A stretch of DNA of 64,000 nucleotides from Podarcis muralis (Eukaryota). The notes beneath the pieces are model-generated. The model worked only from the letters and a program-made list of their open reading frames with translations. It did not search any database and was not told the origin of the DNA. A program made the translations under genes and the position numbers. Where the stretch lies: positions 66,402,001-66,466,000 of the forward strand of contig NC_135657.1 in assembly GCF_964188315.1 (NCBI RefSeq). The letters are read 5' to 3'. Each line of letters starts with the position of its first letter. Within the stretch, counting starts at the first letter, position 1. Positions 3,879 to 49,665 of this stretch are shown piece by piece.

Positions 3879-4857
3879 NNNNNNNNNNNNNNNNNNNNNN
3901 NNNNNNNNNNNNNNNNNNNNNNNNNNNNNNNNNNNNNNNNNNNNNNNNNNNNNNNNNNNNNNNNNNNNNNNNNNNNNNNNNNNNNNNNNNNNNNNNNNNN
4001 NNNNNNNNNNNNNNNNNNNNNNNNNNNNNNNNNNNNNNNNNNNNNNNNNNNNNNNNNNNNNNNNNNNNNNNNNNNNNNNNNNNNNNNNNNNNNNNNNNNN
4101 NNNNNNNNNNNNNNNNNNNNNNNNNNNNNNNNNNNNNNNNNNNNNNNNNNNNNNNNNNNNNNNNNNNNNNNNNNNNNNNNNNNNNNNNNNNNNNNNNNNN
4201 NNNNNNNNNNNNNNNNNNNNNNNNNNNNNNNNNNNNNNNNNNNNNNNNNNNNNNNNNNNNNNNNNNNNNNNNNNNNNNNNNNNNNNNNNNNNNNNNNNNN
4301 NNNNNNNNNNNNNNNNNNNNNNNNNNNNNNNNNNNNNNNNNNNNNNNNNNNNNNNNNNNNNNNNNNNNNNNNNNNNNNNNNNNNNNNNNNNNNNNNNNNN
4401 NNNNNNNNNNNNNNNNNNNNNNNNNNNNNNNNNNNNNNNNNNNNNNNNNNNNNNNNNNNNNNNNNNNNNNNNNNNNNNNNNNNNNNNNNNNNNNNNNNNN
4501 NNNNNNNNNNNNNNNNNNNNNNNNNNNNNNNNNNNNNNNNNNNNNNNNNNNNNNNNNNNNNNNNNNNNNNNNNNNNNNNNNNNNNNNNNNNNNNNNNNNN
4601 NNNNNNNNNNNNNNNNNNNNNNNNNNNNNNNNNNNNNNNNNNNNNNNNNNNNNNNNNNNNNNNNNNNNNNNNNNNNNNNNNNNNNNNNNNNNNNNNNNNN
4701 NNNNNNNNNNNNNNNNNNNNNNNNNNNNNNNNNNNNNNNNNNNNNNNNNNNNNNNNNNNNNNNNNNNNNNNNNNNNNNNNNNNNNNNNNNNNNNNNNNNN
4801 NNNNNNNNNNNNNNNNNNNNNNNNNNNNNNNNNNNNNNNNNNNNNNNNNNNNNNNNN
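3879..4857. other. Assembly gap (979 N) inside a CLVS2 intron
   Basis: Run of N. The ORFs 3716..4912 and 3861..4892 are artefacts of it. Confidence 0.99.
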
Positions 4858-29776: not shown

Positions 29777-29810
29777 GACGTTTCGACGAGGTCTCACTCG
29801 TCATCTTCAG
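29777..29810 (-). ncRNA. Minimal type I hammerhead ribozyme motif (A1)
   Basis: CUGAAGA-U-GACGAG(UGAGAC)CUCGUC-GAAACGUC on the minus strand. Confidence 0.75.
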
Positions 29811-29861
29811 GCTGGTGCTTTCGGCTTCTTGTTCCAGTAACAAGAAGCCGAAAGCACCAGC

Positions 29862-29897
29862 CTGAAGATGACGAGTGAGACCTCGTCGAAAAACGTT
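29862..29897 (+). ncRNA. Mutated hammerhead motif (A2)
   Basis: Same core but GAAAAACGUU: a 2-nt A insertion plus C17>U. Probably impaired. Confidence 0.55.
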
Positions 29898-30046
29898 GCC
29901 TAGACACCCCAACTTTTACACGGGAAGATACCCGAGGACACCAAAACCTGCATTCCTGTACCCGTGAAAATCTACGAAAGCAAATATCTCACCTCTACGG
30001 GGAGGAAACCTTCCAGTTCCAGTAACAAGAAGCCGAAAGCACCAGC

Positions 30047-30080
30047 CTGAAGATGACGAGTGAGACCTCGTCGAAACGTC
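30047..30080 (+). ncRNA. Minimal type I hammerhead ribozyme motif (A3)
   Basis: Intact 34-nt core identical to A1, A4, B1 and B2. Confidence 0.75.
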
Positions 30081-30131
30081 GCCTAGACACCCCAACTTTT
30101 ACACGGGAAGATACCCGAGGACACCAAAACC

Positions 30132-30178
<47 letters not shown>

Positions 30179-30722
30179 CCCTCCCCACAAAATCTGACAC
30201 CAGATCCAGAGGCACACAGAACGCCATCACCAATCAACCACACCAGACCCAAACCCAGACCCTCTCCACAGATGAATTACAGATACCATCCAGTAGCCAA
30301 ACCATGGTGGCACCTCCGGATGCTGCACCCCCCTGCAATCCCTACACAGATCTGGCTGGCACAGGCCACAAAACCACAGCTCGCCCCTATACACGAAGCC
30401 AAGCCAGAGCACAACCAAATGCAGTACAGCCATCTTCTCAAAAAAACTCTTCACAAAGTTCAAGAGTTCAAGACACAAAGGCTTGAGCAACTAATCCACA
30501 CCTAATGACCCACCTAAGTGGGATTCAGGATATCGCTCAAGAAATCACTCAAGATATCCCTCAAGTAATTAAGGAACAAAAGAAGAAAAGGCACACTAGC
30601 CTGGGAACCTCCTCTCTGCCCAAAACATTGGAGGCTATACACCACACCTTCAACAGTATTTATAGGAACTCAAACACTGAGATCCTGCTCTGTTCCAGTA
30701 ACAAGAAGCCGAAAACACCAGC

Positions 30723-30756
30723 CTGAAGATGACGAGTGAGACCTCGTCGAAACGTC
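30723..30756 (+). ncRNA. Minimal type I hammerhead ribozyme motif (A4)
   Basis: Intact 34-nt core. Confidence 0.75.
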
Positions 30757-30810
30757 GCCTAGACACCCCAACTTTTACACGGGAAGACACCCGAGGACAC
30801 CAAAACCTGC

Positions 30811-30873
<63 letters not shown>

Positions 30874-34248: not shown

Positions 34249-35109
34249 AAGTTGCTTTAGTCCTGGGGCAGAAAGGTCAGTACTTTTGAAACAGAAAAAT
34301 GGGAACCGTCAATGAAGTTTTAGCGCCAGTTCCCTTCAGGATTCTTCACCTTGAAAACCATCATCTGTCTTCACAGTGATGATGCTGTGAAGTCAAATGG
34401 TTGATGAGGAAAACTGTGGAACTAGCACATGCTTTGTGAAGCCTGCATAACTAGTGCCCTATTGCTGTCACTGGAGCGCCTCAAAAGAAGTGTCTTCTCC
34501 TAAATTGTGTCCATTCAGACATGCCTAATGATGTAACATGTGGGAAGAATTTGTGTCAGAATGAAATTCCTCTAGAAGAAGAACAGCAAAAAAATCGGCA
34601 GTTGTAAGTAACAGCATAGATGTGATAAAGGTTATTACAAAACATATTATACCATTAAAAATACTGCCACATTTAGATTTAGGTTTCCAGAGAAATTAGG
34701 AGAATTAAGTTATTTCTCTCAGTTTAATTCCCAGATTGGTGCACTTCCAATGGCCCCTTAGTGCTCTCTACTGGACTCTCTGTGGAATATTTCTTACACA
34801 TGAATTCCTCCCCCCCCCCCATTTTTTATTTGAATATTCGTTACAGAATCGTACAAGCAAAACATAAAAGAGGGAGTGGTTATAACTGCATGAAAACTAG
34901 ACTTCAGGGGCAAAATGAATAAATAGGTAAAGGACATTAGAGAAAAATAAGAAAAGGGGTGGAGGGAGAAGGCAGACTTAAAACAAACCATGGCTCCCAA
35001 TACAGCATGAAACATAACCTGGCAATGGAGTCATTGACACGTGGAAGTTCCCTTAATGCAGGAACAGGGAACCTGTGGTCCTCCAGGCATTGTCATATTG
35101 CAATCCCCA

Positions 35110-35596
35110 ATCTATGGTAGTGAAGAACCTTGATCTATTTTGACATATTATTTGATATTACCAGCTGAAGAAGGCGTTCACTCCGAAACAGGGCCCTGTC
35201 CTGGTCACCACTACTGAGTCGTACATCTGATTCACACTCCGGATACTCCTTTTGGCCCTATTTGATTCTTTATTCTTTATTCTGATTTTATATAATATGG
35301 ACTCTTTTTGACTGCCATTGAGACTTGTATAAAACAATTGTTGTGTACTGGTATTTTATGTACCTTTATACTATATCACTGCATATTTGAAACTACATTA
35401 TTTCTGCACTTAAACGTTGTATCTAAATTTACTATTACCTTAAAACTATCGTACTTACACGTTGTGTTTAAATTTACTATTAGCTTCAAACTGTTATTCT
35501 TAGCAGAATATACACGTTTTTCTTTTCAACTCTCGAGTAGGAATTATTCCTTATATTGAAACTTGTGGCCAGAGCTCTTAGTATATGCTTTTCAGT
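35110..35596 (+). mobile_element. Unclassified 487-bp retro-insertion carrying a hammerhead motif, inserted into a short palindromic MITE
   Basis: 15-bp direct repeat ATATTGCAATCCCCA at 35095-35109 and 35597-35611. Removing the insert restores the common ~130-bp MITE seen elsewhere in the window. Confidence 0.7.
35160..35205 (+). ncRNA. Type I hammerhead ribozyme motif, second family
   Basis: ACCAG-CUGAAGA-A-GG(cguucacu)CC-GAAA-CAGGGCCCUGUC-CUGGU: 5-bp stem I, complete catalytic core, palindromic stem III. Confidence 0.75.
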
Positions 35597-37375
35597 ATAT
35601 TGCAATCCCCATCATCCCCAGTCACCATAGCTCATGCTCAGGGGTGATAAGCATTTTAATCCAGCAATATCTGGAAGGCCAGTTTCTCCATCCATGCCTT
35701 TATGAAACTGTATTTACGAATGTTCACAGAAGTAACAAAGGTTGTTTCCAGGCAACCTGTTATAATGATCATTCAACTTTATTGGTTTATGGAGTTTAGG
35801 CAACACTGGCTATTTAAAACAAATCCATCCTGATTTGTTTGGGGGATATTAAACAATGTTACACCAAGCAAGTTTTATCCCCCACTTTCCAGTGCATTTG
35901 TTCATCACTTTCCTTATCCCGAAATAATCATTTTGGGGGAGGAGGTTTGTTTCGTAAGGGCTCCAGGACAGCTTTAATTGCCCAGCCTGAACTTGTTGGG
36001 ATGTGACTGAAGCCCACATGAGAATAGTGAGAGTCTGGAAGTGCCCAAAGGCAACCAACCAATAAGTTTTGCAGTTCTCCTAATCTTTCCCCTTATAAAA
36101 TAGGTGCCAAATTTTTGCCTATCATTTATTTTCAATTGGCAAATCCTTAGCACCTCAACTCACTGTCACTTTGCCTGAAATGCAGTGAGCAAAAAGGACA
36201 CAGAGATCTGAATGCAATAGTGGAGTCTTTATAGCAGTCTCACAGTTAAATGGGTCCTCAGGTATCACAGAGAAATTTTGCTAGGAAATGTCTGGGCAAA
36301 ACGGCTAATCCTATGATATGTTACTAAGGCAGAAAATTAAACTTTAAATTCAATTACAATTATGTTCCTGGTAAATGTCTTCCTGCGGCATATGGCTCTT
36401 TCTGCAGCTTGCTGAATTTCCAGTTGTTACTGAAACAAATATTTGAAGCAGCCAGGATAACGTACTGGCACCATGTAGACACATTTTCTTTTCTGTCTTT
36501 TTTTAGTAAGGGGAATTTCAGTTTGTCTTAGCAAATGTGCCCATCAAATGTATTACCTTACCAAATGGAAAGTTGAAATTCAGACACACACACACACACA
36601 CCACACACACAGTATGGGCTATATGAAAATAGCCCATTCAATTGATCAGCCTACCCACTGCAATATGAAATAGTCCCACAGAAAAATGGCTGCCACACAA
36701 CAGTATGAAGGTGCACAAAACATGGTAAAATGAAATAATAGAACGTACACCATGGCAATTTACTATCTTATCCACCCATAGCTGCAGAAAAAAAATATGC
36801 AACAATCAGAAGTCTCTGGACTTTCTCGCTCTTAGGTCTTTCATTCATTTTCTTCTGTTGCTCTTGTAATCATTTGGAATAAGATTATGCATCTAACCCA
36901 ACCCCACTTCTTCAGAGGCATAAAGATCAATTGTTTAAACTTTCTCACATACTGTGGTGTCATGGCACCCCAGCTGCACCCTGCACCCAGGACCATGAAG
37001 GGAAGGGAGATCTGGCCAAAATAATGTGTTCTTCTCTACTTTGCCTTCCCTTACAATGGGCTGTCCACAGCCACCAGGTCAAAAGTCTGCTTTTCCCTGG
37101 CTACCTTAACCTTCCTTCCCTTTAGCTAGAATGGTGTTTGTTGGGTGGTTTAAAATGCAGGGTGGTTTAAAATAATGGAGACCACAAGGTTTTATGAATC
37201 ATGATTAAATGTTTACTAAAACGGTAAGTTGTTCTTAGAAGGGGAGGAGGCTTAAGCAGATGAGTGGTTATGTGCATACAAAGCAATTCCCAAAATGAGC
37301 GGAAATACAGAAATCAACGTAGGAATAAACACATCTGGTTAGCCCATAATTAGACAGTCCCTAACATTTAAAGAC

Positions 37376-41099: not shown

Positions 41100-41517
41100 A
41101 TAGCGCCAAGGAAGAGAGGGAGGACATGGCGATGGGGGCAACCGCGAGGCCGGGTGCGGAACAAGCCAGCGTCAGGGTCCCCGCGCGGGCGGGCGGGCGG
41201 GGTTGGGCGGAGGGCGCCGGCGGGCCGAGGCAGCTGCGGCCCAGGCCCTCCCTTGCCGGGCATTGTGACGCGCGCGGGCGCCGACTGTGCTGCTGCGCAG
41301 CCGGGGGCGGCGTGCGCCAGGGCCCGAGGCCACATCGGCCATGAGGCGGCACCAGCAGCGGCGTCGGCCGCGGCGCGGGTCGGGCCAGTACCTCGGGGCG
41401 GAGCCCGGGTGGCGCGTCTCCCCGAGCGACCGAGGCGCGCCCAGCGCCAGCAAGGGCCGCAAAAAGGCGCCCGCCACGTCGTGCTGCAGCTTGTCGGGCG
41501 CCGAGACCCCGCGCAGG
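41100..41517 (+). promoter_or_regulatory. CpG-island promoter/5' leader of the CCDC185-like gene
   Basis: Overlapping GGGCGG boxes at 41187-41210 and CRE half-sites CGTCA (41170) and TGACG (41266). CpG-rich sequence continues into the CDS. Confidence 0.65.
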
Positions 41518-43425
41518 ATGGCGCGGCGACGCAGCAGCCCCGGCCGCTTCTCCCCGCCGCGGCCCTTCCCGGACGCCTACAGCTCGGAGCCCGAGGTGGC
41601 GGGCGGCGAGGGCGGCCTGCGGCGACACCTCCTGGCGCAAGCGTACCGCGACGAGGGAGGCCTGCTGCTGCCCCCGCCGCGCAAGGGCAAGGGCTGCTCG
41701 ACGGCGCCGCGCGGCAAGCGGCCCGCCGCGTCTGCCTCTTGCGCGTCCCCTCTGCGCCTGTCCGCTTGGCAGCAGCAACACCTGGCCCCGGCGGGCGAAG
41801 GCTGCGCCACGCCGTGCACCACCTCGTGCACCACGCTCTACGGCGGGGACTTCCCGGGGCACCCCGATCTCCCCGCGCGCTCCCCGGTGGGCAGGTGCAC
41901 CCGCGTGGAGGAGCTGCTCCGCGACGACCAGTGGGCCAGCCCGGTGCCTCGACCCTTGGAGTATGGCACGGATCTCCCCACCGACGCCAGCAAGCCGCCC
42001 TCCATCTGCCCCTCTTCCTTCTCCTTCGCCCAGTTCGACAGCAAGGCCTCCCCTCGCCTGGAGAAGGAGCCCCCCCGGAGAGACTGGCAGGAGCCCTGTG
42101 ACAGCAGCCACAGCCTGGCAGACCTCATGCACAGTTTGGCCAGGCCCTATGAGGACGAGGAGCCTCAGGCCTACCTGCCCCGCGACCCCAGCGCCCACCT
42201 GCACCAGCGTCTCCTGGGCCGCAAGCCCCGCCGCAAGCCCCGCAAGGGAGACCCGCAGGTCAGCCTGCAGGACCTGACGGACAAAAGGTACGAGGACCTG
42301 ATCCCCGCAAGGGACAAGAAGATCGCGGCCCTCATGCTCGCCAGGCACCAGGAGGAGGAAGAGATGAAGGACCGCCAGCTGCAGGTTTCCGACGCCTGGG
42401 ATAAGATGAGGAGGAAGGAGAAGCAGCACAAAGCCCGGGCGGAGAAGGAGAGGCAGTACCAGTTGGTCGACAGCCTGGACCAGTGGCAGAGGGACCGCGA
42501 TCAACGGAAAGCCAAGCTCAGGCTAGAGGAGCAGCAGCTGTTGGCAGCCCGGGAGAGGGATGTGATGCTTCGGGACAAGAAGTGGAAGAAGCTGGCCAAA
42601 GAGCAGGATTGCAGGCGGAGGGAGAAGCTGGAGAATGCTCGGCTTCAGGCCGAGTATCGGAAACGGTGCCAGGAAAAGCAGCTCTGGGACAAAAGGTTAA
42701 GCGACAGGCGTACCAAAGAGCAGAACTCCGCTTTGTACAAGGAAAGGATGCTGCAGGCCCTGGAGAAGAGGCTGATCAAGGATATGGAAAGGAAGAGGAG
42801 GAAAATAGATATGAATGACTACAAGACCAAGCACATGAGCGCTAAGGACCAGGTGGAAGATCGGGTCAAAGCCGACGAGCTGTACAAGAGGCTGTGTATC
42901 GAACAAAAGCTTCAGAGGTCCCAGGAAATCCTGGAGCAGCTGCTTGAAGAAAGGAACAGGGAACTGAAGGAGAAGACTTTAAAGGAAGAAGAGCAGGGCT
43001 TGATAGCCAAGGTAAGAGCCAAAGAGACGGAGGAAGAGAAGAGGAGGCGCAAGGAGATGTTGCTGCAGATAGCCGAGATGAAGATCCAGCAGGCCAGAGA
43101 AATCATGTCCAAAAATATCCGAGACAGATCGCAGCGCGTGAGAGAGCTGAACTGTATGAAAGAACGGAACCACCATTTTCGCAAACAGAAGCTTGATTAT
43201 GACGAAAAATGTCACCTACAGGAAATGCAAGAAGCTTTAAGAAGGAAAGCTCAGAAAAGCAATCAGATTCTAAGGCACAAGGACGCAGCTATCGACGAGT
43301 CTAGGAGAATAGCCAAAGCATCTTATGACCTTAGAGAAAAAGTGAGAGACCTGATAAATCGCAATTCATTTGACCAGATGGCTTTAGATGCGCAACGTAA
43401 TGCAAGCCTCCTTAGAGGCCTGTAA
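41518..43425 (+). CDS. CCDC185: Intronless coiled-coil protein of the CCDC177/CCDC185 family, closest to CCDC185 (635 aa from ATG 41518; 694 aa if ATG 41341 is used)
   Basis: Uninterrupted ORF with an R/K/E/Q coiled-coil C-half. Motifs recalled from human CCDC185 align: ENARLQAEYRKRCQ ~ EKARAQAEHRKQCQ; RELNCMKERNHH ~ RELNHLREKNHH; EKCHLQEMQEAL ~ EKCHIEGIKEAI. DKKIAALMLARHQEEEE is CCDC177-like. ATG 41518 has a strong Kozak context (aggATGg). Confidence 0.82.
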   Translation: MARRRSSPGRFSPPRPFPDAYSSEPEVAGGEGGLRRHLLAQAYRDEGGLLLPPPRKGKGCSTAPRGKRPAASASCASPLRLSAWQQQHLAPAGEGCATPCTTSCTTLYGGDFPGHPDLPARSPVGRCTRVEELLRDDQWASPVPRPLEYGTDLPTDASKPPSICPSSFSFAQFDSKASPRLEKEPPRRDWQEPCDSSHSLADLMHSLARPYEDEEPQAYLPRDPSAHLHQRLLGRKPRRKPRKGDPQVSLQDLTDKRYEDLIPARDKKIAALMLARHQEEEEMKDRQLQVSDAWDKMRRKEKQHKARAEKERQYQLVDSLDQWQRDRDQRKAKLRLEEQQLLAARERDVMLRDKKWKKLAKEQDCRRREKLENARLQAEYRKRCQEKQLWDKRLSDRRTKEQNSALYKERMLQALEKRLIKDMERKRRKIDMNDYKTKHMSAKDQVEDRVKADELYKRLCIEQKLQRSQEILEQLLEERNRELKEKTLKEEEQGLIAKVRAKETEEEKRRRKEMLLQIAEMKIQQAREIMSKNIRDRSQRVRELNCMKERNHHFRKQKLDYDEKCHLQEMQEALRRKAQKSNQILRHKDAAIDESRRIAKASYDLREKVRDLINRNSFDQMALDAQRNASLLRGL

Positions 43426-46787: not shown

Positions 46788-46821
46788 GACGTTTCGACGA
46801 GGTCTCACTCGTCATCTTCAG
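46788..46821 (-). ncRNA. Minimal type I hammerhead ribozyme motif (B1)
   Basis: Intact 34-nt core on the minus strand. Confidence 0.75.
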
Positions 46822-47395
46822 GCTGGTGCTTTCGGCTTCTTGTTACTGGAACAGAGCAGGATCTCAGTGTTTGAGTTCCTATAAATACTGTAGAGGAGGT
46901 ATGGTGTATAGCCTCCAATGTTCTGGGCAGAGAGGAAGTTCCCAGGCTAGTGTGCCTTTTCTTCTTTTGTTCCTTAATTGCTTGAGGGATATCTTGAGTG
47001 ATTTCTTGAGTGATATCCTGAGTACCACTTAGGTGGGTCATTAGGTGTGGATTAGTTGCTAAAGCCTTTGTGTCTTGACCTCTTGAACTTTGTGAAGAGT
47101 TTTTCTGAGAAGATGGGTGTACTACATTTAGTTGTGCTCTGGCTTGGCTTCGTGTATAGGGGCGAGCTGTGGTTTTGTGGCCTGTGCCAGCCAGATCTGT
47201 GTAGGGATTGCAGGGGGGTGCAGCATCCGGAGGTGCCACCATGGTTTGGCTACTGGATGGTGTCTGTAATTTATCTGTGGAGAGGGTCTGGGTTTGGGTC
47301 TGGTGTGGTTGATTGGTGATGGCGTTCTGTGTGCCTCTGGATCTGGTGTCAGTTTTTGTGGGGAGGGCTAATTTCCAGATGTCTGGCAAGCGGGA

Positions 47396-48121
47396 CACGA
47401 AACAGGACACGAAATTAATTTTGCAGATTCCAAATTGCTCTCTAACATGGAACATCACCACAAGAGAATAATCATGGAAGCCATCGAGATAGAGAAACAC
47501 CCTCACAACATGAACAAGCGTGACGACACATCCCGCTTGCCAGACATCTGGAAATTAGCCCTCCCCACAAAAACTGACACCAGATCCAGAGGCACACAGA
47601 ACGCCATCACCAATCAACCACACCAGACCCAAACCCAGACCCTCTCCACAGATAAATTACAGACACCATCCAGTAGCCAAACCATGGTGGCACCTCCGGA
47701 TGCTGCACCCCCCTGCAATCCCTACACAGATCTGGCTGGCACAGGCCACAAAACCACAGCTCGCCCCTATACACGAAGCCAAGCCAGAGCACAACTAAAT
47801 GTAGTACACCCATCTTCTCAGAAAAACTCTTCACAAAGTTCAAGAGGTCAAGACACAAAGGCTTTAGCAACTAATCCACACCTAATGACCCACCTAAGTG
47901 GTACTCAGGATATCACTCAAGAAATCACTCAAGATATCCCTCAAGCAATTAAGGAACAAAAGAAGAAAAGGCACACTAGCCTGGGAACTTCCTCTCTGCC
48001 CAGAACATTGGAGGCTATACACCATACCTCCTCTACAGTATTTATAGGAACTCAAACACTGAGATCCTGCTCTGTTCCAGTAACAAGAAGCCGAAAGCAC
48101 CAGCCTGAAGATGACGAGTGA
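47396..48121 (+). pseudogene. 5'-truncated Penelope ORF: GIY-YIG endonuclease C-terminus plus a low-complexity tail
   Basis: ETGHEINFADSKLLSNMEHHHKRIIMEAIEIEKHPHNMNKRDDTSRLPDIWK fits the PLE pattern H...GH.I.F.....L......KR...EAIEI......N.......L...W. Confidence 0.82.
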
Positions 48122-48138
48122 GACCTCGTCGAAACGTC
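48105..48138 (+). ncRNA. Minimal type I hammerhead ribozyme motif (B2)
   Basis: Intact 34-nt core. Confidence 0.75.
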
Positions 48139-49665
48139 GCCTAGACACCCCAACTTTTACACGGGAAGATACCCGAGGACCATGAAATGGTCTCCCTCCA
48201 ATCTGCCTGCAGTCAGAATTCTTTTTGCAAAAATGTGGAAATCAGCTTGTACTCTGCCTATTAAAGAAAGGATAGAAAAAAACTATGGGAAAACACTGCT
48301 ATGGTTAAACTGAAGAATTGAATCAGATTTAAAGGAAAAACCAAAGGTATGTCACAATAATAGTGCATGACTTGTTGGATTGTGCTTGGATTGACTTGTT
48401 GGATTCTAGTGATTCTACTTATTCCACTGGGCTCCTTTGGGAGGATGAACAGGGAATTATTATTATTCAGATAACTCGTATCAGGTCCAGTGAGCATGGC
48501 CAATAGTAAGGGATGATGGGACTTGTAGTCCACAATGTCTAGAGGGCAATGTGTTGTCCACCCCTGGCTTAAGAAAGGTTTGTGTGTATTGGCTGTTTCC
48601 TTCCCCTCACTCCTCTCAACCTAATCATTCCTAAATACACAAATTGTAAAAAATTAAAAACCAAAACAACAAAAATCTGTAAGAGTCTCATGATCTCTCT
48701 TTCAAAGAACGCAGAACCTACCATTGCTCAGGAAATGTGGAGAAAAAAATGTGTCATATTTATGTGAAGATATGGCATCAAAATGTTTTCAGGGGGAGGC
48801 CTTATTTGATTTTGAGCTATAGCAGGACTAGAAACGAGTGTTACCTTTATATTTGCTTAACACCAATGTACTAGTTTACAAATGATCCCTTTGATCACTT
48901 TTTATTTTCTGTTGCTTGCTCATGGTATTCCTACAGAAAAGTTTATTAAGAGAGTAATGAAACCAATATCCCTTATTTATCCCTTGGATTCTCTTCCAAT
49001 AAATTATATTGTGGAATTGTGAAGACATTGCTTCCCAACATTTCTCTGTCCCGTTCCCCACTCTGAAGCCACTTTGTGTAAATTTAGAATATGATGTTTC
49101 CAACTTGGTTTTCTTTATTACCATGCAGACGATATTCAACTATTCTTCCCCTCACCAAAAAAGAAGTCTGGGGAACCAGTGTTTTTTTCCTCCCAGGCTT
49201 TCTTCTTAACTTAAAAAAAACAAACCCACCTCGCACAAGCTGAAGTCTGTTTTGCGTTGTTAGGCCAAGCCATCGTCTGATGGTGATGTAATGGAGAAGA
49301 TCCACGATGACTGGCTGCAGCCAAACTGGTCATGTTTTGTCCACACATGGCAGAGCAGTCGGTGTACAACACTCACACTGAAGCTAAATCTGTCCTTACA
49401 AAAGACGGCTAAAGAAAAAGCATTCACAGCCTAACAAAGCACCAGCCGAGCATGAAAGCAAAGGAAATCTTGCATTCAGTAGAGAGACAGTTGCCAGCTC
49501 TTTCAGTTAAAGGCTGGCGACTATGCCATGTGGTAACAGGAGGCGACAATTTTTTTCTGCTCCTTGTGATATGCAAGCTGGATCTTCAGGTGGGAGACAG
49601 ATGAAGATAGCTGAGTGAAACACTTCCGTGATACGTCGTTTGGCTGCTGAAACCCTCAGAAAATA

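Follow-up and report, generated by a model that had tools for sequence, protein, structure and literature searches.

Minimal hammerhead ribozymes of Penelope-like elements (PLEs) recur with five features that the search descriptors had not imposed, namely an unpaired nucleotide between A9 and G10.1, a G10.1-C11.1 pair, a palindromic 15.2-16.2 or loop 3, a helix I of 4-5 bp and a helix II of 6-8 bp (Cervera & de la Pena 2014, PMC4209133). In Drosophila, rotifers, shrimps, and mosquitoes, there are variants whose helix III is a small palindrome (PMC4209133). PLE copies are described as truncated at the 5' end, lacking a poly(A) tail, and having hammerheads near the 3' end (PMC8557442), and the Poseidon element PAc of Anolis is reported to use AT-rich ATT targets and a protein-assisted ribozyme whose cleavage was demonstrated experimentally (Frangieh et al. 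2024, PMC11167929). Metazoan retrozymes of the kind without long terminal repeats (non-LTR retrozymes) are non-coding, low in GC, flanked by target-site duplications (TSDs) of more than 4 bp, and carry a type I hammerhead suited to dimers (Cervera & de la Pena 2020, PMC7229834). They are thought to derive from the pseudo-LTRs of PLEs (PMC7229834; Li, Clavereau & Pollet 2026, bioRxiv 10.64898/2026.07.22.740005), and the latter study found them in 4 out of 5 sampled reptile genomes, with solo monomers being common in vertebrate families. Here, we analyze a 487-bp insertion carrying a hammerhead motif in a 64,000-nt stretch of the genome of the lizard Podarcis muralis (contig NC_135657.1, positions 66,402,001 to 66,466,000, hereafter the window). 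It is probably a recent copy, truncated at its 5' end, of a dispersed family of retroposons with a PLE-type hammerhead, a family that likely stems from the pseudo-LTR of a PLE lineage other than the Poseidon-type one also present in the window.

A retroposon copy inserted in a palindromic MITE

The segment 35110-35596 is a TSD-flanked insertion that splits a palindromic miniature inverted-repeat transposable element (MITE), which agrees with the initial annotation of this DNA. The features of the region, with the strand where one applies, are the following:

35067-35094, unstranded: left arm of the palindromic MITE-like host, which extends to the first repeat copy (inverted-repeat partner at about 35660-35690; alignment with a paralogue in the window)
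35095-35109, unstranded: copy 1 of the target-site duplication (ATATTGCAATCCCCA), a perfect 15/15 direct repeat, this segment being single in MITE paralogues
35110-35596, + strand: the 487-bp insert, one copy, truncated at its 5' end, of a young multi-copy retroposon family (contig depth, copy ends)
35160-35205, + strand: type I minimal hammerhead motif
35265-35283, + strand: (ATTCTTT)2.7 microsatellite at a switch in base composition (found with TRF)
35408-35497, + strand: two tandem 45-nt units, 82% identical, in the AT-rich tail (repeat search)
35597-35611, unstranded: copy 2 of the target-site duplication, 100% identical to copy 1
35612-35690, unstranded: right arm of the host MITE-like element (palindrome fold; alignment with a paralogue in the window)

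The two copies of ATATTGCAATCCCCA and the internal 45-nt duplication are the only long direct repeats of the region. A diverged MITE paralogue at 48440-48600, on the reverse strand, crosses the junction uninterrupted with one homologue of the 15-mer, and 8-19 paralogous MITE contigs of a DNA run also cross it (loose ends 35086 and 35608). Since the 15-mer is single in the paralogues, it is the target-site duplication and the 487 bp are the insertion. When the insert and one repeat copy are removed, the emptied MITE folds into a palindrome at -46.3 kcal/mol. Within the window itself, the commonness ascribed to this MITE shows only weakly.

The insert is AT-rich (GC of 33.5%, against 43.1% for the window) and non-coding. 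Each reading frame has at least 5 stops, and no long ATG-initiated open reading frame (ORF) was found in any frame of 35110-35596. The longest ORF, with a TTG start, has 83 amino acids, and a homologue search of the protein collection returned no relatives of it.

The host MITE is also represented among RNA reads. About 75 stranded reads at 35608-35648, with the first mate on the minus strand and at least 5 differences, come from a paralogue of the MITE, which shows that at least one MITE copy lies inside a well-expressed transcript.

A minimal hammerhead with a long loop-less palindrome

The hammerhead motif begins 50 nt inside the insert. It was read directly from the sequence, with the same core, stem I, cut site, and helix III as in the initial annotation, and is made of the following parts, all on the + strand:

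35160-35164 and 35201-35205: strands of stem I, ACCAG and CUGGU, a perfect 5-bp helix I
35165-35171: core CUGAAGA
35172: unpaired A after A9
35173-35184: stem II and its loop, GGCG-UUCA-CUCC, with pairs G-C, G-C, C.U, and G-C
35185-35188: core GAAA
35188-35199: loop-less 12-nt palindromic helix III, ACAGGGCCCUGU, A15.1 and U16.1 included
35200: C17, with the predicted cut between 35200 and 35201

The conserved core of type I hammerheads (C3-U4-G5-A6-N7-G8-A9, G12-A13-A14, A15.1-U16.1, H17) is fully present as CUGAAGA, GAAA, U35199, and C35200, and the G10.1-C11.1 pair corresponds to G35173-C35184. The inner palindrome CAGGGCCCUG is its own reverse complement and is directly followed by the U at 35199 and the C at 35200. 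Of the five features that recur in PLE minimal hammerheads, the motif has four and lacks only the length of helix II.

We searched for such motifs with a descriptor that requires the core and the G10.1-C11.1 pair, allows at most one mispair among the 4 positions of stem II and one among the 5 of stem I, and requires a helix III that is self-complementary, whatever its even length. In the window, both strands included, it matches only 35160-35205, and it has no match in 300 windows resampled with a first-order Markov model (about 38 Mb, both strands). Two scans of metagenomes with exact and relaxed hammerhead patterns gave 0 matches. The hammerhead families of Rfam have no match over 34900-35800, even at E<=10, and there is no hammerhead at gathering score over the whole window. 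The negative results from Rfam carry little weight, because Rfam also misses all seven Poseidon-type hammerheads of the window.

The folding energies favor the association of two molecules. The minimum-energy fold of the monomer is not a hammerhead (-10.1 kcal/mol, against -6.0 for the hammerhead fold, with a z-score of +0.6). As an intermolecular duplex of 12 bp, helix III reaches -24.3 kcal/mol, against -1.8 for the weak 4-bp hairpin that a single molecule could form, and the cofold of two copies is at -35.7 kcal/mol, compared with 2 x -10.1 for two monomers. The palindrome would thus pair two RNA copies into a double hammerhead, with the predicted cut after C35200. A monomer would not hold helix III, and the ribozyme would be active only as a pair of RNAs. 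By analogy with what was shown for the Anolis Poseidon hammerhead, cleavage by the dimer may need the help of a protein. The locus being solo, the ribozyme lacks a partner in cis and is best regarded as a passenger.

The seven Poseidon/PAc-type minimal hammerheads of the window are identical or nearly so (CUGAAG-AUG-ACGAGUGAGACCUCGUCGAAACGUC) and lie at 29781-30811 and 46792-48134, in head-to-tail and inverted arrangements. The copies that carry them extend 63 nt beyond the cut, or about 100 nt when the 'tail' is counted, and finish in (TA)n/(CA)n microsatellites, as in the PAc element of Anolis. When the hammerhead module, the post-cut stretch, and the AT-rich tail of the insert were compared with them by local alignment with shuffling, only ACCAG(C)CUGAAGA was found in common. 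The insert is thus unrelated in sequence to the Penelope family of the window, as had been noted before.

A young family of about one hundred copies

To characterize the family, we placed the Logan contigs and the raw reads from four runs on 35000-35720 at a likeness of at least 80%. In the DNA run X1, which is from the same species, contigs bridging the junctions have depths of 11.7 and 9.2, which shows that the insertion is also present in that individual. Inside the insert, the contigs of this run have depths of 214-374 each and summed depths of 214-1840. The latter correspond to 21-176 times the unique level (9-12 in the unique flanks), with a mean of about 86, although contig depth is only a rough proxy and not a copy number. 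The proposed retro-insertion of a multi-copy family is thereby supported. The sequence was also found in runs labelled as two other organisms (B and C), and a self-BLAST of the region against the window (word size 7) revealed no second copy there. The family is a dispersed retroposon present, very roughly, in 100 copies in Podarcis muralis.

The copies are very similar to one another. Three contigs with depths of 214-250, or 20-30 times the unique level (35251-35366, 35347-35486, and 35457-35574), are identical to the window copy, which differs from the family majority at 2-4 positions: 35179 (C for T, in loop II), 35487, the polymorphic 35120, and maybe an indel at 35249, the family indels being clustered at 35249-35252. 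The near-identity of the window copy and the identical contigs of high depth show that the insertion is young and that the family was recently active.

Within the hammerhead, the only variant reaching the 10% reporting threshold across the family contigs is C>T at 35179, and the motif is retained in every family contig and in organism B. It had been suggested that an A at 35175 would restore stem II. However, no family variant reaches 10% at this position, and since none is listed at either 35175 or 35182, the C.U mismatch of stem II is a trait of the whole family. The family is too uniform for a test of covariation.

A fixed 3' end and variable 5' ends

Some other copies reach further upstream than 35110. 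Homologous sequence (...TATATACTTTATTATAT(T)TATG|ATCTATGG) continues past this position in a DNA contig of organism A and in an organism B contig of 807 nt, and a 180-nt contig of run X15 also carries 97 nt upstream of it. At the other end, a contig of organism B matches up to 35596 and continues as GTAGGTTAAAACC..., a contig of X15 matches up to 35601 and continues as TTCAACAAG..., and the window locus runs from 35596 into the MITE. There are thus three different downstream flanks in all, with ends at 35596-35601, and ATATT follows two of the three 3' junctions. A fixed 3' end next to differing flanks, together with variable 5' extents, points to target-primed reverse transcription with 5' truncation, and the locus has all the usual marks of the corresponding retroposons (TSD, common 3' end, variable 5' truncation, many copies).

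These copy ends modify several points of the initial annotation. The insert had been described as a small non-autonomous ribozyme-bearing retroelement. A multi-copy retroposon with a PLE-type hammerhead it is, but the copies extending past 35110 show that the 487 bp are a 5'-truncated copy and not the whole element. The truncation also accounts for the position of the hammerhead near the 5' end of the insert, so that the circular permutation invoked before is not needed, and the sequence upstream of 35110 in the other copies has no match to the 3' end of the insert. The label retrozyme-like is not supported either, since its defining feature is missing here: there is one hammerhead and no tandem unit. 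We found no second hammerhead or tandem hammerhead unit at the locus, and the other copy ends adjoin unrelated flanks. Circle junctions were absent from all four runs, the RNA depth being very low.

We propose that the RNA of a longer element was reverse-transcribed from the fixed 3' end (35596), and that this was primed at a nick within ATATT..., an AT-rich target that was nicked again 15 bp away. Synthesis would have halted early, at the present 35110, which would have left 487 bp between 15-bp duplications within the MITE. The element may have been mobilized by a reverse transcriptase/endonuclease (RT/EN) of the PLE type at an AT-rich ATATT target (this motif being found at 2 of 3 junctions, and ATT being preferred by PAc).

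Internal organization of the insert

The insert has two parts of different composition. GC is 44% in the half that carries the hammerhead (35110-35260) and 28.6% in the remainder (35261-35596). The switch occurs about 62 nt after the cut site, which is the distance at which the Poseidon-type copies of the window end. The hammerhead module has about twice the depth of the sequence directly downstream, and contigs at about 30 times the unique depth cross the composition boundary. The depth of the family dips at 35375-35449, and many copies may differ in the number of 45-nt units. The AT-rich tail may belong to the family itself, as a long region that separates the hammerhead from the start of reverse transcription.

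An ATG (ATGCTTTTCAGT) at 35585-35596 opens a reading frame 12 nt before the 3' end of the element. It is conceivable, as pure speculation, that an ORF continued from there into a next tandem unit, by analogy with PAc, where the ORF start lies upstream of the 3' end of the unit.

Weighing the origin of the family

The family carries a PLE-type minimal type I hammerhead, and its origin is therefore most likely the pseudo-LTR of a second PLE lineage. The element would be either a non-autonomous PLE derivative or the terminal part of an autonomous one. Several observations weigh against this origin or against a working ribozyme. No ORF with RT or GIY-YIG domains is linked to the family, whose full-length element was not recovered, and 396 nt separate the cut site from the 3' end downstream of it, compared with 63 nt in the Poseidon-type copies of the window. 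The AT-rich tail could come from another retroelement and have been moved by the enzyme of a long interspersed nuclear element (LINE). Stem II has only the pairs G-C, G-C, C.U, and G-C, closed by a UUYA loop, with the mismatch found family-wide, whereas PLE minimal hammerheads usually have 6-8 bp, and the conservation of the motif may only reflect the youth of the family. Bulk RNA reads are also very few. Among the raw reads of a bulk RNA run (X23, 12% of the run read), only about 14 fall on the insert. Their first mates are all on the + strand, as would be expected, with most stranded libraries, of RNA antisense to the ribozyme. There is no pile of read ends at 35200/35201, where the depth of just 3-4 is too low to inform on cleavage. 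The reads on the insert are 95-99% alike to the window copy, none reaching 99%, which indicates that they come from other copies, seemingly from two loci.

Some further observations concern the RNA data. Small contig sets (X15-X20 and X31-32), guessed to be RNA, hold the insert without its unique flanks. We considered X15 and X31 as evidence of expression and discarded them, since their ratio of MITE to family depth is like that of the DNA run and they may be low-coverage DNA. Four of six bulk RNA reads have T>C at both 35271 and 35293, and neither change is seen in any DNA contig (depth 568-780). This may represent an unsampled paralogue or, if the RNA comes from the minus strand, could result from A-to-G editing.

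The composition of the insert raises the question of a chimera, i.e. of an element resembling a short interspersed nuclear element (SINE) in which a PLE fragment with the hammerhead (about 35110-35262) has been joined to an AT-rich 3' module unrelated to it (about 35263-35596), and which is moved by a LINE reverse transcriptase (e.g., RTE/BovB or CR1-like), and carries an inert ribozyme. The sharp change in GC at the (ATTCTTT)n repeat, where Poseidon-type copies would end, and the double depth of the hammerhead module are in line with such a fusion. A TSD of 15 bp without poly(A) is compatible with RTE-type elements and PLEs alike. Yet, we identified no LINE tail, and the tail of the insert matches nothing else in the window. 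With about 20-150 times the unique level, this tail is no deeper than the hammerhead module, unlike what is expected of an abundant LINE 3' end, and contigs of appreciable depth run through the boundary. We regard this explanation as rather unlikely. We also consider it unlikely that the PLE hammerhead module was fused to an unrelated AT-rich 3' module, giving a recently active retroposon with about 100 dispersed solo copies, and that the exceptionally long, loop-less 12-nt palindrome dimerizes the transcripts of separate copies into a double hammerhead in trans. If this were true, the ribozyme would work between loci and not within a tandem array.

Could the insert instead be a complete, small non-autonomous element of the retrozyme kind, with the hammerhead brought to its 5' side by circular permutation of a circular or multimeric RNA template? 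Its non-coding nature, low GC, dimer-type helix III in a type I hammerhead, and TSD longer than 4 bp match the metazoan non-LTR retrozymes (PMC7229834), and solo monomers occur commonly among the retrozymes of vertebrates (Li et al. 2026 preprint). However, the hammerhead is single, no tandem unit or joint was found in any run, and other copies extend upstream of 35110 with sequence unlike the 3' end of the insert. The same 3' position beside unrelated flanks is what linear, 3'-anchored reverse transcription produces, and not permuted copies of a circle, which makes this explanation improbable. A chance or decayed look-alike in an ordinary retroposon, without ribozyme ancestry, seems more improbable still. 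The absence of an Rfam match, the monomer fold and its z-score, the mismatch in stem II, and the lack of covariation and of read ends at the cut site are all compatible with it. Against it stand the absence of descriptor matches in the resampled windows, the retention of the motif in every family contig and in organism B, and the presence of four features of PLE hammerheads that the search descriptors had not imposed. The Rfam models also miss the Poseidon-type hammerheads of the window, which match the PAc ribozyme of Anolis whose cleavage is experimentally established. A truncated copy of a retroposon family derived from a PLE is the explanation that we consider the most probable.

Other features of the window

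The only Rfam match at gathering score in the window is a tRNA-like sequence at 23973-24044 (32.5 bits), which has several mispairs and is probably not a tRNA gene but the head of a tRNA-derived SINE. An ORF of 712 amino acids (41287-43425) shares the + strand with the insert and lies about 6 kb farther downstream. It encodes a full DUF4659 domain (E 2.4e-95) and probably represents a host gene with a single exon. The 979 consecutive N at 3879-4857 correspond to an assembly gap or a masked stretch.

Comparison with known systems

The minimal hammerheads of PLEs are among the closest known systems to the motif described here. They share with it the type I topology, the CUGANGA...GAAA...UH core, the unpaired nucleotide after A9, the G10.1-C11.1 pair, the 5-bp helix I, and a palindromic helix III that implies action as a dimer, and they are mostly found as solo motifs in truncated copies. 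The lizard motif differs by its helix II, which has 4 positions with a C.U instead of 6-8 bp, and by the palindrome of helix III, which is unusually long (12 nt with A15.1/U16.1) and loop-less. In addition, the lizard family is not linked to any RT/EN ORF or pseudo-LTR. The Poseidon element PAc and the matching copies of the window resemble the insert by the AT-rich target, the 5' truncation, the lack of poly(A), the unpaired nucleotide after A9, and the ACCAG(C) that precedes CUGAAGA. In PAc, the start codon of the ORF lies at the start of stem II, which has 6 bp, the helix III has 2 nt (ACGU), and the 3' end is found 63-100 nt post-cut. In contrast, the insert family has no AUG at stem II, a helix III of 12 nt, and a 3' end 396 nt post-cut.

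The resemblance to non-LTR retrozymes concerns the non-coding and GC-poor sequence, the type I hammerhead suited to dimers, and the TSD longer than 4 bp. Yet, there are no tandem units and no second hammerhead at the locus or in the three other copy ends seen, no circle junctions were found at the very low RNA depth, and the hammerhead of the lizard is of the minimal PLE type, not a canonical one with loop-loop contacts. The SINE-like retroposons SM-alpha and Sj-alpha of Schistosoma are also short, dispersed, and non-coding, with one hammerhead. They have an RNA polymerase III promoter in their head and a canonical hammerhead, neither of which is seen in the recovered part of the lizard family.

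Many elements of this description were known already: the presence of minimal hammerheads in truncated PLE copies, the logic of dimers, the additional nucleotide that follows A9, PLE derivatives that are non-autonomous, and retrozymes as solo monomers. The present family does not alter the current picture, which places minimal hammerheads in PLE pseudo-LTRs and in non-autonomous derivatives. What is particular here is the combination of a long loop-less palindrome with a minimal, mismatched stem II in a young lizard family of about 100 copies. The genome would then hold, beside the Poseidon-type Penelope family, a second, recently active lineage of hammerhead retroposons that is unrelated to it in sequence. 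Its hammerhead, which joins the usual PLE hallmarks to an unusually strong dimerization palindrome and a minimal stem II, provides a convenient natural test of whether PLE-type hammerheads act as dimers, and of whether they are needed for mobility or merely carried along.

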